Shown here: positions 16,114 through 53,261 of the stretch, one piece after another
Layout: each line of letters starts with the position of its first letter
How positions within the stretch are numbered: the stretch's first letter is position 1
Source of the DNA: Octopus sinensis
Taxonomy: Eukaryota
Length of the DNA stretch: 64,000 nt
Assembly (NCBI RefSeq): GCF_006345805.1
Contig: NW_021833473.1
Span: forward strand, 136,001-200,000
Direction: 5' to 3'
Notes under the pieces: generated by a model
What the model saw: the letters and a program-made list of their open reading frames with translations, nothing else
Databases searched by the model: none
What the model was told of the DNA's origin: nothing
Translations under genes and position numbers: made by a program

Positions 16114-16260
16114 TTAAGCATGTATCCTAACTCTTACTAGTACGTATGTAACAATGTATGAAACTATACCAAGAAAAATTGCTATTTTGATGTACACTCT
16201 TGCTTTTGAGTTCGACTTCAGCGCTGCGGCTGTATTTCCACCTGCGGCATATTCATTCGC
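16114..16260 (-). CDS. CD225/dispanin paralogue A, terminal coding exon
   Basis: ttctAG acceptor, phase 0; ANEYAAGGNTAAALKSNSKARVYIKIAIFLGIVSYIVTYVLVRVRIHA* (147 nt incl. TAA); linker plus TM helix of the CD225 fold. Confidence 0.9.
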   Translation of the reverse strand, partial: ANEYAAGGNTAAALKSNSKARVYIKIAIFLGIVSYIVTYVLVRVRIHA

Positions 16261-18177
16261 CTAGAATATAAAATGAAATTTTATATGTAAAGCATGCAAA
16301 TAAAACTCAACAACACCGAACACATTGCTTTCAAATTTTGACACAAAGATAGCAATTTCAGAGGAGCGGTTAACTCGATTATATCGACCCAAGTACTCAA
16401 CTGATATTTATTTGATCGATCTCGAAAAGGATGTTAGGTAAAGTCGATATGGGCAGATTTGAACTTCGAACAAAATGCCAAAATGCCACTAAACATTTTG
16501 CTCGGCTAACGGTTCCGCCAGTTCGCCGCCTTAACAACAGCAAATGTATTGTCACGTATTTACAACTCATATAAGTTTATTGGTGTAAAGAGATTTGTCA
16601 AGATGATTCTTTGGAAATGACCTGCCAGTGTCCATGTCAAACTGAGATCAAGAACGCAATTTTACCTTACTCTAAATCTCATTACAATACAAATCAACCA
16701 CCGTGCTCTAATCCAGTGTTACATGTAAGTAGGTTGTAAAGATTGAGAAAGAAGCTAACAAATTATCATATTTAATAAAAAGATGGTTTAAAAAATCTTT
16801 AAGAAGGTCGAAACATCATTGTGAAGAAAGAATTATATGGATGAAAAAATTATCAACAAAGAAACAGACGGTGGTGATGTGACAACAAACTTCAGTAATA
16901 GCTTTGAAAGTCGCGAGTGGCAGTGAACTGGTATTATTTGTCAGGGTTACGACCATTAGTGTTATAAAAGTAGATAGTTAATCCAGACTGCGAGGTGTCA
17001 TGCTTTTTCTTAGCCAATTGCTACTTAGGATTAGTAGCAACCTTATTTATATACACATTGTAAGTTAGAAGATATATAAAAGAAGTATGGAACAAGATTG
17101 TTGTGGTTGATATACTTGGAGTAGTTATTGATAGAGATTTTGGAATAAGGAAGTATTACACGTGAGTCTTTATATAAAAACCCTTCTCATTTGATCTTGT
17201 TTAAGGTGATTTGCTTTCTTTATCCCCCATAATCTTTATAAATAAATGCTTCACGTATCTAAGATGGCGTCTCATTAAGTCGACGATACGGCTAACGTCA
17301 CAACTTAATCTGTTATAAGTTTCGCGTGTTGAATATATTTTTTATTTGTCTATTACATATTCTTACACGTATTTCAACGTTGAATTTGTACGGTTTTGGT
17401 GTATCTTTGTTTCTAACATGTAATGTCATGGATGAGCAGTGTTCGTATATCTTTGCATGGAGCGAACTGAACATGATTCCATGTGTCTTCTATGCATAAA
17501 GTTTATATGCATATATTTATTATTCATGAATCAATATGTATGGTTTTTCAATATAATATTGAACATAGTATGGAAAATAAGAAATACAAAAACTGAACAA
17601 GTTTTCTAGTAACATCAATATATAAATATAAGTATTTCCCAACATATGAACATATTAGTAGGTTTAAATACATGTATTGTGCCCTTTCAATAATTAATAT
17701 TTATCTTTCACCAGGTGGAGTACTTTTTTTGTTGAATTTTAGTACATTATACACATATATGTGTATGTGCGTGTGTATGTGTGTGTGTGTACGTGTTATA
17801 TATATACATATACATTATAATACGGAAACAAGGAAAATGCCACATGTATTTGATTGGTTTCCATACTTACAGTTGAAAATGTCTCAATGACTGAAACTGG
17901 TACTAAAATCTTTTTTATAAAATCAATTTAGCATTTTCTATCTTAGCCTTTTTCCCCATATATATATATATATATATGTATATATATATATATATATATA
18001 TATATAATATATTATATATATATATATATTATATATATATATATATATAATATATATATATACATACATATATATATATATATATATATTATATATATAT
18101 ATTATATATATATATTATATATATTATATATATATATATATATATATATATATATATATATATATATATATATATAG

Positions 18178-19505
18178 CCAGCGAGGCATTTACAATAAAA
18201 TAAACTGACATTAGCGAAGAAGATGTTCTACTAGCCATAGATGAAGTGGACACAAACTCAGCTGCTGGTCCTGATGGTTTCCCAGCCATCCTCCTCAAAT
18301 CGTGCAAACATTCCCTGGCAAAACCCCTCAAGATTCTCTGCCAGAGCTCTCTTACAAATGGCAAACTGCCAAGCAAGCTGAAGGAGGGAATAATATACCC
18401 AATACATAAAGGGGGAAGTAGAGCAGATGCCAAAAACTATCGGCCTATCTCTCTGACTTCACACATCAGCAAATTCATGGAACGTATAGTCAGAGGGAAA
18501 CTAATCGCATTCCTTGAAAAAAATAACTTGCTAAGTGATACCCAACATGGTTTTCGACCAGGTAGGAGCTGCCTGACCCAGCTCTTACAACATTATGACC
18601 GGGTGTTGAGGCAGTTACTCAACAAATCAAATGTAGATGTAATATACCTTGATTTTGCAAAAGCTTTTGACAAGGTGGATCATGGTATGATATGGCACAA
18701 ACTGCGTGACCTCGGCATAGCAGGAAAACTTGGAGTGTGGTTGCATGACTTCCTGAAAGATAGGAGTCAGGCAGTAGTGGTTAATGGAGCCACCTCTATG
18801 AACACACAAATAGTGAGCGGTGTTCCACAGGGCACTGTCTTGGGACCACTGCTTTTTATAGTGGCCCCCTCAGATATGCCCTCAAATGCCCGGATAGCCA
18901 CACTGGCAAGCTATGCAGATGATACGAAAGTCTCACAGAAAATACAGAACCCCAGCGATGTTGCTTCACCTGCAGCAGGTGTTGGACTCAATTTACAGAC
19001 GGGCTGAAGATAATAATATGCAGTTTAATGCTTAAAAATTCCAGGCTCTGCACTACCAGCATCCACAACTGAATATTAAACCTATAGGGTACACCGGTCC
19101 ACAGGGAATTTCAATCCCAGAGCCTAAGTCAGGGAGGGACCTGGGTATCGACATGAGTGATGATACATCTATCCAAGTGCACATTACCAGGATGGCGACA
19201 AAGTGCAGACGACTGGCTGGATGGATCCTAAGAACATTCAGAACCAGAGATAAGGAAACCATTATGGTCCTCTGGCGGACATTCGTCCTCAGCCGCCTAG
19301 ATTACTGCTCACAGCTATGGTCACCACCAGTGTGAGATTAACAGCGGACCTTGAAGCAATCCAGAGAAGATTCACAAAGAAGATCGTCTCTTTGCAACAG
19401 CTCAGCTACTGGGAAAGGTTGAAACGGCTAAGACTCTACTCCCTTGAGAGAAGACGGGAGAGGTATGCAGTAATATATATCTGGAAGATCCTAGAAGAAA
19501 TTGTG
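18178..19505 (+). mobile_element. CR1/Jockey-group LINE RT fragment
   Basis: ORF 18246-19007 NYRPISLTS..SK.MER...QHGFRPGRSC.TQLL...DVIYLDFAKAFDKVDH...SGVPQGTVLGPLLF...YADD. Confidence 0.95.
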
Positions 19506-19559
19506 TAAGTGTAGGTCGTATACGAGTGGGTATATTTTTATAAAAAAAGAAGTTTGAAA

Positions 19560-51490: not shown

Positions 51491-51509
51491 CTCCAGTTGC
51501 TAAAATGAT

Positions 51510-52850
51510 TTTTATGTTAGATGCACAACAACAGGAGACTCCTAGGTTGTGCACCTAACATAGAAAAATCATTTTAGCAAGTACCCACAATACAAGTGAG
51601 GAGGCAGGCTGCACTTCCAGGGTATATAACTGTCCAGTAGGAGGCCGATTCGAGGCTGAAGGGGTCATTAATGAGGCTATGGTGATACCTAGACCTGATA
51701 TCCGCAAAAACAGTAATGTACAATCAAACAACAATATTATTAGCTGATTAACCAGTTCTCATGCCAATACTGTTGCCACGCGCAGAGATAACAGCCAGTC
51801 CAGGACTAGTATCACAGAGAGCATCACTGAGGACTCCGGTACCACTGCCACGAACAATGAACAAACCATAGATACAGATAGAGTGACCAGGCCCTCAATA
51901 TATGTAACCACCAGTACAAACAATGCACCTAGAAATAATGACCTATCCAGCACCAGTGACTTTGAGGAGGTATCTACCGTTCCCAGTTTCGTTACCTCAG
52001 GAGATGACCAAGTATTTATCTTCAACACCGATAGGATGACCAGCCCCGCACCGTATGTTACCAAAGGTACGAATAGGGCCACATATTATGTGTGGAAATA
52101 TATTGGCTCTGCGAGTACTTCATTCAAGCGGCGTTTTCTTAACCACCAGCTACCGTTGTGAGTCCCAGAGAGATGCTTTGTCACGTCCCTGACCCACCAT
52201 GTATGACATCCCTTAGATTAAGAGACCCCGTGTAATATCAGGTGGAAACTAATTGATCATCTGGGTCTTTATAATAATGGAAGTGGTCGTTGCAAGATCT
52301 GCATCGCGGAGAGAGCCAAAATTCTTAAGGGCTGTAAGAAACCTGGAACATTAAACAGCCTCACCAGATCGGGCACGGTAACGCAGCGGAGCTGCGGGCG
52401 AAGGCGGGCAACAAAAGGCGGACGTCCAGAGGCGGGCGTGCAGAGGCGGACGTCCACATGCGGGCGAAGGCGAGCTTCAAAAGGCGGGCATCTGCTCTGC
52501 TCTGCTCTGCTCTGCTCTACCCTGCTCTGTCCTGGATACATTTAGAAGTATTTTCTAAATGTATCCACTTCAAGTGTTACTTACTGGAAAATTGGATCCC
52601 TCTGTTTGCTAGTCAGGCCTCTTAGGGTCTATAAGGGTTTTCCACCTCTAATTCAGAGGTAAAAACCCGTCCTCATTAATGTCTTTCTTTTCTTTTTGCT
52701 TAGACGTATCCCTCGATTTCTGAGCGCTTCCTCACGTCTGCAATATTTAAAATTTTGTATTTATATAGAGTTTGAAGAGCAGTCCATAAGGCTTTTGCTT
52801 TGTGGTCGCGAAGCCTTGGGTAACTCTATGTCTAAGATATAAAATGTTCG
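51510..52850 (+). mobile_element. PLE remnant, paralogue of 25180-26520
   Basis: About 90% identical by eye; in-frame stop near 51744. Confidence 0.85.
52765..52829 (+). ncRNA. Inactivated paralogue of the hammerhead at 26437
   Basis: Stem I intact; core TTGAAGA (C3U without G8A) and GAAGC (A15.1G). Confidence 0.7.
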
Positions 52851-53163
52851 GTAAAATATATACATAAATATATACATATATATACGCATGCGTGTGCATA
52901 TATCCTATATGTTAGGTGCGTTGAGTGCTCCTGTTACTATTTTAGTTCTGAGCAATCTCTCAGCCATTCAATGAATACAAGTTTATAAAATAAATCCCAG
53001 CCTAAATCATATATTTAACTCCAAAAACTGATATGTTTGACCAAAGTCTCCCAATGGTGGTTTCCTAGCATAGTCACACTTCAATGATTAAAACCAGTAA
53101 AACATCAGGATATTTGGGTGTAGATCAGTAAAAATTAAAGTGAAGAGAACAAAATATACTTAC

Positions 53164-53261
53164 AACAATAATTTCACGCCTTGGCTGCTGCTCCACAGGA
53201 GGCCGTGGTGGAGGCTGTTCAGATTCCACAACAAATACACATACTTCTCTTTGTACAGAAA
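53164..53261 (-). CDS. CD225/dispanin paralogue B, proline-rich N-terminal exon
   Basis: tttttacAG acceptor, GTAAGT donor, 98 nt phase 1-0; xSVQREVCVFVVESEQPPPRPPVEQQPRREIIV. Confidence 0.85.

Follow-up and report, generated by a model that had tools for sequence, protein, structure and literature searches.

Conserved introns combined with hypervariable exons are a classic signature of a molecular arms race, described mainly for secreted toxins and for some immune genes. Conotoxin genes show position-specific codon conservation, and in the major histocompatibility complex (MHC) recombination or gene conversion homogenises introns while the selected exons stay diverged. Vertebrate IFITM proteins, which restrict viruses, are relatives of the dispanins. 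Here we analyse a 64,000-nt stretch of Octopus sinensis DNA (contig NW_021833473.1, positions 136,001 to 200,000; hereafter the window) that carries two tandem CD225/dispanin genes, termed A and B, both on the minus strand and within a 12-kb segmental duplication. Their exons are more diverged than their introns. The phenomenon itself is known but occurs here in an unexpected protein family and animal group, and the finding is real and statistically robust.

The term 'accelerated evolution' has been applied to the snake venom-gland PLA2 isozyme and small serum protein genes (Ogawa/Nakashima/Ohno; review in PMC7285919, data in PMC6609765), and our comparison with the PLA2 genes is drawn from reviews. 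In such genes, introns and untranslated regions are more conserved than coding sequence, the codon positions are similar in divergence, and the nonsynonymous rate (KA) is close to or above the synonymous rate (KS); the youngest tandem duplicates of this type have intron divergences (K) of 0.05-0.065 and KA/KS ratios of 1.5-1.7 (PMC7285919, PMC6609765). In vertebrates, IFITM genes have been duplicated in tandem in individual lineages, have evolved under positive selection in some clades and, where duplicates are recent, have undergone gene conversion (PMC3499546); dispanins of molluscs are included among the candidate antiviral genes of PMC9334734. A search of the literature revealed no paper on octopus dispanins with the pattern described below.

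The window aligns to Octopus vulgaris chromosome OX597815.1 with 98.2-98.8% identity. Exactly two O. sinensis RefSeq proteins are encoded here, namely the products of gene A (XP_036355475.1) and gene B (XP_029656310.1/XP_036355474.1, annotated as 'proline-rich transmembrane protein 1-like'); NCBI names these genes as PRRT1-like or TRARG1-like dispanins. Both products match the Pfam CD225 profile (PF04505) over nearly its whole length, scoring 62.2 bits for A and 56.6 bits for B against a cutoff of 27.1, and their residues follow the family pattern of two hydrophobic segments, a conserved loop and the motif CC...P.G..A.....AN...G..A...N..A. An alignment of the CD225 regions of seven octopus paralogues contains 12 invariant columns, including Cys, Gly, Ala-Ile, Ala-Asn and Gly residues. 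Acceptor AG, donor GTAAGT and open reading frames are all intact in A and B, so that the initial annotation was right to regard the frames, splice sites and CD225 motifs as undamaged, as judged by reading the sequence and by the Pfam matches. The predicted products are small CD225 membrane proteins, not secreted peptides, and inspection of the A and B gene models by eye, with no predictor run, showed no N-terminal signal-peptide architecture.

Between A and B the exons differ at 36-39% of positions, compared with 6-13% for the sequences that flank them (Fisher P ~1e-7). This confirms the observation on which the initial annotation was built, and the counts made there by hand were also reproduced. 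The last 31 codons of the core CD225 exon contain 34 nucleotide differences, with 15/31 amino acids identical and 2 clean synonymous changes, and the terminal exon differs at 57/141 nt and retains 17/47 amino acids. By comparison, the intron adjoining the core exon (22981-23092 in A vs 49600-49710 in B) carries 5 mismatches and 1 gap in 112 nt. The initial annotation put shared transposon remnants at about 90-95% identity; apart from private insertions, the two copies are colinear, repeats included, and are joined by blastn matches of 85-97% identity.

When each exon was compared with its 150-nt flanks by Fisher test, differences were found at 18/50 positions in the 5′ half of exon 2 and 17/290 in its flanks (P=4e-8), at 40/105 positions in the core exon and 32/248 in its flanks (P=2.5e-7), and at 56/145 positions in the terminal exon and 16/150 in its flanks (P=1.6e-8). 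The jump in divergence is located at the splice sites in the A/B alignments. The same three segments also exceed the most diverged intron block (61/385), with P=1.4e-3 for the 5′ half of exon 2, P=2.3e-6 for the core exon and P=7e-8 for the terminal exon. Hypervariability between A and B does not extend to the 3′ half of exon 2 (3/48 differences), which differs from the Octopus bimaculoides gene at 14/48 positions, 12 of these differences being nonsynonymous.

Octopus bimaculoides has a single gene at this locus (XP_014789606, locus L003), which aligns once to A and once to B. The upstream flank of this gene matches sequence upstream of B, and its downstream flank matches sequence downstream of A; the duplication therefore copied the region from exon 2 through 25 nt past the stop codon. 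Gene B kept the ancestral exon 1 (MEI... in both species), which is present in O. bimaculoides and agrees with proteins P0003 and P0185, and gene A acquired a different first exon. The duplication would be about as old as the split from O. bimaculoides, with ~6-8% neutral change per branch as estimated from the least-homogenised intron block.

Introns were aligned five ways, using A and B from both O. sinensis and O. vulgaris together with the O. bimaculoides gene (O). In all three tracts compared (Table 1), divergence from O. bimaculoides is 9-13%, while that between A and B swings from 1.5 to 15.8% (heterogeneity P ~1e-13; run test on variable sites, P=0.007). In the 0.4-kb block of greatest divergence, which we term star-like, A, B and the O. 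bimaculoides gene are equidistant (18/16/15 changes). This intron mosaic is the result of non-allelic gene conversion between A and B. Gap-free columns in an alignment of the A and B copies from O. sinensis and O. vulgaris contain 0 concerted sites and 1 cross site. As there are no concerted sites, conversion between A and B predates the O. sinensis/O. vulgaris split, and we rejected recent conversion on this ground.

Intron homogenisation by gene conversion, offered in the initial annotation as the alternative to selection, is thus borne out by tracts at 1.5% and 3.9% beside one at 15.8%, and it exaggerates the contrast between exons and introns. Conversion contributes to the pattern but is insufficient on its own, because even the unhomogenised block is less diverged than the exons. 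Comparisons with O. bimaculoides, to which conversion between the paralogues is irrelevant, likewise show more divergence in exons than in their flanks: the core exon of B differs from the O. bimaculoides gene at 21/97 positions and its flanks at 27/296 (P=2e-3), and the terminal exon of A at 48/144 positions and its flanks at 22/147 (P=3e-4). Conversion therefore does not create the pattern.

The octopus genes resemble the PLA2-type systems in that introns and flanks are more conserved than exons, in a K of 0.04-0.06 for the homogenised introns, in differences spread over the three codon positions as 44/32/32 (94 codons compared between A and B) and in a ratio of nonsynonymous (dN) to synonymous (dS) divergence of 1.2-1.4. 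They differ from them in encoding CD225 membrane proteins and not secreted toxins or toxin binders, in comprising only two copies plus the few older paralogues seen, and in owing part of their contrast to intron homogenisation by gene conversion. The description of these exons as conotoxin-like holds for the evolutionary pattern and fails for the biology, as the products are predicted membrane proteins rather than secreted peptides. A hypervariable coding segment lies beside conserved flanking sequence in both systems, and codons of conserved residues are kept unchanged, those of the Cys-Cys pair being TGC TGC in A, B, the O. bimaculoides gene and paralogue P0010. Octopus dispanin genes lack the signal peptide, propeptide and mature-toxin architecture, however, and have a different gene structure, belong to another family and form a far smaller one; we know of no venom link for these proteins. 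A shared CD225 domain links A and B to IFITM genes; the two are probably not orthologous to the IFITM clade, their names point to PRRT1- or TRARG1-like proteins, and neither PMC3499546 nor PMC9334734 describes an exon-over-intron inversion of such magnitude. Finally, the sequences that behave comparably in the MHC are alleles under balancing selection, whereas those of the octopus are paralogues.

To examine selection we used our own GY94-type implementation of codon models with 5 to 7 sequences, together with pairwise NG86 estimates. The latter gave dN 0.44, dS 0.38 and dN/dS 1.16 for A/B; 0.46, 0.39 and 1.18 for A/O; and 0.30, 0.21 and 1.40 for B/O. Much of the change counted as synonymous is located in codons whose amino acid has also changed. 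Clean synonymous sites are third positions in codons whose amino acid and first two bases are both unchanged. Such sites differ at 8/38.7 for A/B, 10/35.3 for A/O and 8/46.7 for B/O, and the corresponding counts for four-fold sites of conserved codons are 3/28, 6/25 and 3/33. Clean synonymous divergence matches that of the unhomogenised intron block for A/B and B/O (P=0.49). Nonsynonymous sites have diverged about twice as far as this block, with values of 0.33 vs 0.158 for A/B (P=5e-7), 0.35 vs 0.13 for A/O (P=8e-11) and 0.245 vs 0.129 for B/O (P=2.4e-4).

Site models agree with this excess. With five taxa, M2a is preferred to M1a (P=3.6e-5) and places 19% of sites at a dN/dS (omega) of ~9; the preference holds without the least certain segments (P=0.0067) and with seven taxa, paralogues included (P=3e-5). 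Branch models yield an omega of 0.45 for the background, 0.58 for the O. bimaculoides branch and 2.8 for P0010, and the stem of B is without any synonymous change. Differences between A and B cluster within codons, such that codons with 0, 1, 2 and 3 differences number 32/29/18/12 against an expectation of 22.8/40.1/23.5/4.6 (P=5e-5), and the motif residues are invariant across all paralogues.

Several results weigh against adaptive change as the source of this excess. A single omega fitted to all branches by maximum likelihood is 1.36, which is not significantly >1 (P=0.15), and the test of nonsynonymous against clean synonymous differences inside the exons is not significant (P=0.14-0.57). 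NG86 dS, at 0.38 for A/B and 0.39 for A/O, is well above intron K. Clean synonymous change is raised on the A lineage (A/O 10/35 vs 59/449 in the intron block, P=0.02), and the A stem has an omega of ~0.9 on a very long branch. The M2a test is prone to false positives caused by multi-nucleotide changes, recombination and alignment uncertainty, and was applied here to only 5-7 sequences. In gene A, exon 2 differs between O. sinensis and O. vulgaris at 20/167 positions and the adjacent intron at 44/3605 (P=1e-12), and these exon differences include 5 clean synonymous changes (P=0.002), so that amino-acid selection alone does not explain the divergence of this exon. In the O. vulgaris copy of A, moreover, one additional base close to the exon 2 end disrupts the proline-rich frame, which hints either that A is decaying in that species, and is not under selection there, or that the assembly is in error. 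The initial annotation had named dN/dS at or below 1, with exon dS as high as dN, as the outcome under which selection should be abandoned, and the values found (omega 1.16-1.4, dS 0.21-0.39) come near to it.

The proposal of strong positive selection therefore stands in part: nonsynonymous divergence about twice that of the oldest intron block and the M2a result speak for it, and an exon dN/dS not significantly >1 speaks against it. Selection, like conversion, does not suffice by itself. Diversifying selection on a subset of residues would be the best reading, judged by the intron yardstick and by site models fitted to few sequences. We consider it somewhat better than an even proposition that accelerated, probably adaptive exon change and old gene conversion of introns between A and B jointly produced the inverted pattern. 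On this account, the coding exons would have gained amino-acid-changing substitutions at about twice the rate of the least-homogenised intron, with the core and terminal exons and the 5′ half of exon 2 affected and the CD225 motif residues left fixed. The A lineage would have changed most and the B stem by nonsynonymous substitution only, with change on the O. bimaculoides lineage as well. Most introns, the flanks and the 3′ half of exon 2 would have been re-homogenised by conversion between A and B, and the diverged exons left intact. Selection rather than a mutational process would then be behind the exon excess, and conversion tracts would have stopped at the exons or been purged from them.

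The same mosaic of homogenised and unhomogenised tracts could have arisen if A and B were older paralogues that predate the O. bimaculoides split and whose introns alone evolved in concert, with no adaptive change; the exons would then record the real age of the pair, exon conversions having been purged because each protein has a function of its own. Exon dS of 0.38 far above intron K, a one-ratio omega not above 1 and an A-stem omega near 0.9 with large dS would all be expected in this case. Moreover, A/B divergence in the star-like block is at least as large as A/O and B/O, and the exons group B with the O. bimaculoides gene, leaving a branch uniting A and B that is near zero. We nevertheless regard this explanation as unlikely. 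O. bimaculoides has a single gene whose flanks are in the pre-duplication arrangement, and an A-like protein from other species is absent among the 1.84 billion representatives searched. The entire 12-kb unit is colinear, including its repeats, and the oldest intron block is star-like and not long on the A side. Exons exceed flanks between species too, where conversion cannot act. A/B divergence at clean synonymous sites (0.21) and four-fold sites (0.11) fits the oldest intron block, and the B stem carries no synonymous change.

A mutational process directed at exons would raise synonymous and nonsynonymous change together, whether it acted by segment switching from unsampled paralogues or transcripts, by multi-nucleotide mutation or by error-prone repair. 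The near-equal involvement of codon positions, the excess of codons with three differences and the raised clean synonymous change on the A lineage are in keeping with such a process, and the same features prompted mutational mechanisms to be proposed for toxin genes (PMC7285919). Exon 2 of gene A is the most suggestive segment. Its first ~100 nt differ between O. sinensis and O. vulgaris by 17 substitutions and two codon indels, beside intron sequence that is 1.2% diverged, and the differences start at the first exon base, after ~100 identical intron bases. Over the same interval gene B is almost unchanged, and two other dispanin orthologue pairs retain 97% and 99.5% protein identity. A mutational process, segment replacement or an old polymorphism may account for this tract.

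However, a search of the window and of six related loci for a donor of the divergent tract found none, and the databases searched yielded no similar protein. The all-nonsynonymous change on the B stem and the retention of third positions in conserved codons point to selection, and A and B hardly differ in the 3′ half of exon 2. We also know of no exon-limited germline mutator in animals, and on balance judge an exon-directed process to be quite unlikely. The spectrum of A-specific changes looks mixed by eye, with no evident A-to-G bias of the kind that resembles RNA editing. A still bolder form of this idea, in which a germline mechanism rewrites coding segments in a cephalopod membrane-protein family by templated replacement or exon-limited hypermutation, appears very doubtful to us; its strongest hint is how far the O. 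sinensis and O. vulgaris versions of exon 2 in gene A have diverged.

That the exons of one or both duplicated copies drifted neutrally, through relaxed constraint or pseudogenisation, is highly improbable: although omega is ~1, gene A has lost its ancestral first exon, O. vulgaris A carries a frame-breaking base in exon 2 and is annotated in another frame, and the terminal exon of a further paralogue, C, has AT at its acceptor, neutral decay cannot push exons past adjacent introns in divergence, the frames and splice sites of the three hypervariable exons are intact in both species save for that extra base, the CD225 motif residues are invariant in proteins well above the Pfam cutoff, differences cluster by codon, and the O. 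sinensis and O. vulgaris versions of gene B are almost alike.

The extra base lies at L001 ~10120-10140, where O. vulgaris reads GAAAATT and O. sinensis GAAATT, and it accounts for the different frame of the public annotation (P0001). A second O. vulgaris isoform, P0002, ends in an antisense reading of the paralogue C core exon. The P0001 frame and the P0002 end look like annotation artefacts, or like decay of A in O. vulgaris. For O. sinensis we rejected the frame annotated in O. vulgaris (MKMLQVNLK...), as the proline-rich frame is continuous with the core exon and is that of XP_036355475. Within this frame, gene A exon 2 carries an A-specific in-frame insertion of 25 codons (26972-27046) that resembles a diverged tandem copy of the adjacent proline-rich segment, with 33/45 nt identical in register by eye (PPPPPREQQEPTYEN vs PPRPPVEQQPTREI). 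The insertion creates a PTYENV motif that has no counterpart in B or in the O. bimaculoides gene. This motif resembles the PPxY and YxxPhi sorting motifs of IFITM3.

Other dispanin sequences give further information on rates in this cluster. The intron block just downstream of the core exon can be aligned in five or six paralogues, with representatives at L003 24147-24390, L004 21142-21385, L005 33842-34085 and L001 43126 downwards. It is ~90% identical in the neighbouring O. bimaculoides gene P0010, ~72% identical in P0007, which lies 300 kb away, and recognizable over ~55 nt in O. vulgaris paralogue C. The block holds invariant stretches such as GTATTTTGTGGTCACA and may be a constrained splicing or regulatory element. 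A structured or known RNA was considered here and rejected, given a sub-threshold Rfam match (E=0.76) and an RNAalifold energy of -13 kcal/mol with no covariation support. The protein encoded by P0007 is 61% identical to that of the O. bimaculoides gene over the aligned CD225 region, compared with ~43-51% for A. P0007 thus combines the most similar protein with the most diverged intron, which shows that exons and introns evolve at decoupled rates in the cluster. The O. bimaculoides pair P0010 and P0005 has a dN/dS of 0.65 and a clean synonymous divergence of 0.32; it was rejected as a second recent accelerated pair because its intron homology is patchy (74-90%) and the pair is older. The O. 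vulgaris orthologue of P0010 was not found within the 10-kb flank upstream of B.

A search of the window for further core exons yielded those of A and B only, and paralogue C, which is convergent with gene A, is represented by a terminal exon alone; only O. vulgaris yielded a core exon of C (L001 43127-43234). The C exon is preceded by a 150-bp tandem repeat (4041-5076; 6.9 copies, 97% identical) with inverted partial copies at 3811-3998, and both exon and repeat are absent from the syntenic O. vulgaris position. Beside this O. sinensis-specific segment (3322-5710), 1.45 kb of the window (1870-3321) is inverted relative to L001 31089-32541. O. bimaculoides P0024 looks like the orthologue of C, and their identity of ~64% over the terminal exon suggests that C may also be fast-evolving.

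The new first exon of gene A adjoins a Helitron remnant. An open reading frame beside this exon (28529-28861, plus strand) matches Pfam Helitron_like_N with E=6e-30. Copy A has lost its original first exon and gained the new one beside this remnant. Helitrons can capture gene fragments, and the partial duplication that produced gene A might therefore be Helitron-associated. The 14.5 kb between the copies is full of transposon remnants and has no counterpart at the O. bimaculoides locus; it contains additional open reading frames at 29048-29428, 34486-34947 and 37973-38959 (all plus strand), and one of the open reading frames has STPR repeats. An interspersed repeat of ~400 bp occurs at 14876-15280, 55519-55911, 61106-61507, 7398-7866, 5516-5737 (inverted) and 32239-32420, with copies 84-94% identical, and is present also in the O. 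vulgaris and O. bimaculoides loci. One copy lies ~200 bp downstream of coding exon 1 of gene B, in the first intron. This repeat is probably a short non-autonomous transposon.

Table 1. Coordinates of dispanin exons, duplicated segments and intron tracts in the window (A, B and O denote gene A, gene B and the O. bimaculoides gene).
Feature	Position	Strand	Description
Duplication copy A	16089..27816	-	starts 0.7 kb upstream of exon 2, ends 25 nt beyond stop; without ancestral exon 1
Duplication copy B	42389..53978	-	exon 1 and upstream region of the ancestral gene retained
Gene A, new first coding exon	28165..28237	-	MHPNPPKKFFQGLLLNSKSIKTLQ plus 1 nt; XP_036355475.1; tblastn 100% with P0004 N-terminus
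Gene A, exon 2	26924..27096	-	phase 1, 57 codons, proline-rich; 5′ half hypervariable
Gene A, core CD225 exon	23093..23203	-	37 codons, VEREEPDPVPNLMWASIIVTVCCNLPFGIIAIMYSSQ
Gene A, terminal CD225 exon	16114..16260	-	48 codons plus stop
Gene A, extra 3′ exon of RefSeq model	14212..14325	-	alternative C-terminus; tblastn of P0004 C-terminus
Gene B, exon 1 (coding part)	61704..61713	-	10 nt, ATGGAAATTA then gtaagt; MEI plus 1 nt
Gene B, exon 2	53164..53261	-	phase 1, 32 codons
Gene B, core CD225 exon	49711..49815	-	35 codons
Gene B, terminal CD225 exon	42428..42571	-	47 codons plus stop
Paralogue C, terminal CD225 exon	5168..5392	+	ANSMVKDGRIEDAKTANKSAKLFIRISVIVGII...; convergent with gene A; acceptor AT, not AG
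Homogenised intron tract 1	A 25010..26244; B 51338-52580	-	A/B 3.9%, A/O 9.6%, B/O 9.9%
Homogenised intron tract 2	A 23518..23906; B 50389-50819	-	A/B 1.5%, A/O 8.5%, B/O 9.0%
Unhomogenised star-like block, intron 1	A 26245..26729; B 52581-52969	-	A/B 15.8%, A/O 13.1%, B/O 12.9%
Intron block just downstream of core exon	A 22848..23092; B 49467-49710	-	alignable in five or six paralogues

The locus provides a compact test case, as it comprises two genes within 12 kb and an outgroup with a single ancestral copy, and selection, gene conversion and possible exon-directed mutation are separable at A and B. It also gives cause for caution with similar claims elsewhere, because intron homogenisation can inflate contrasts between exons and introns. 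By analogy with vertebrate IFITMs, our guess is that the octopus proteins might act at a host-pathogen interface. If our favoured reading is true, the pattern of conserved introns and hypervariable exons would be extended to a CD225 membrane protein and to cephalopods, and octopus dispanins would be flagged as candidates for a host-pathogen or other fast-changing interaction.

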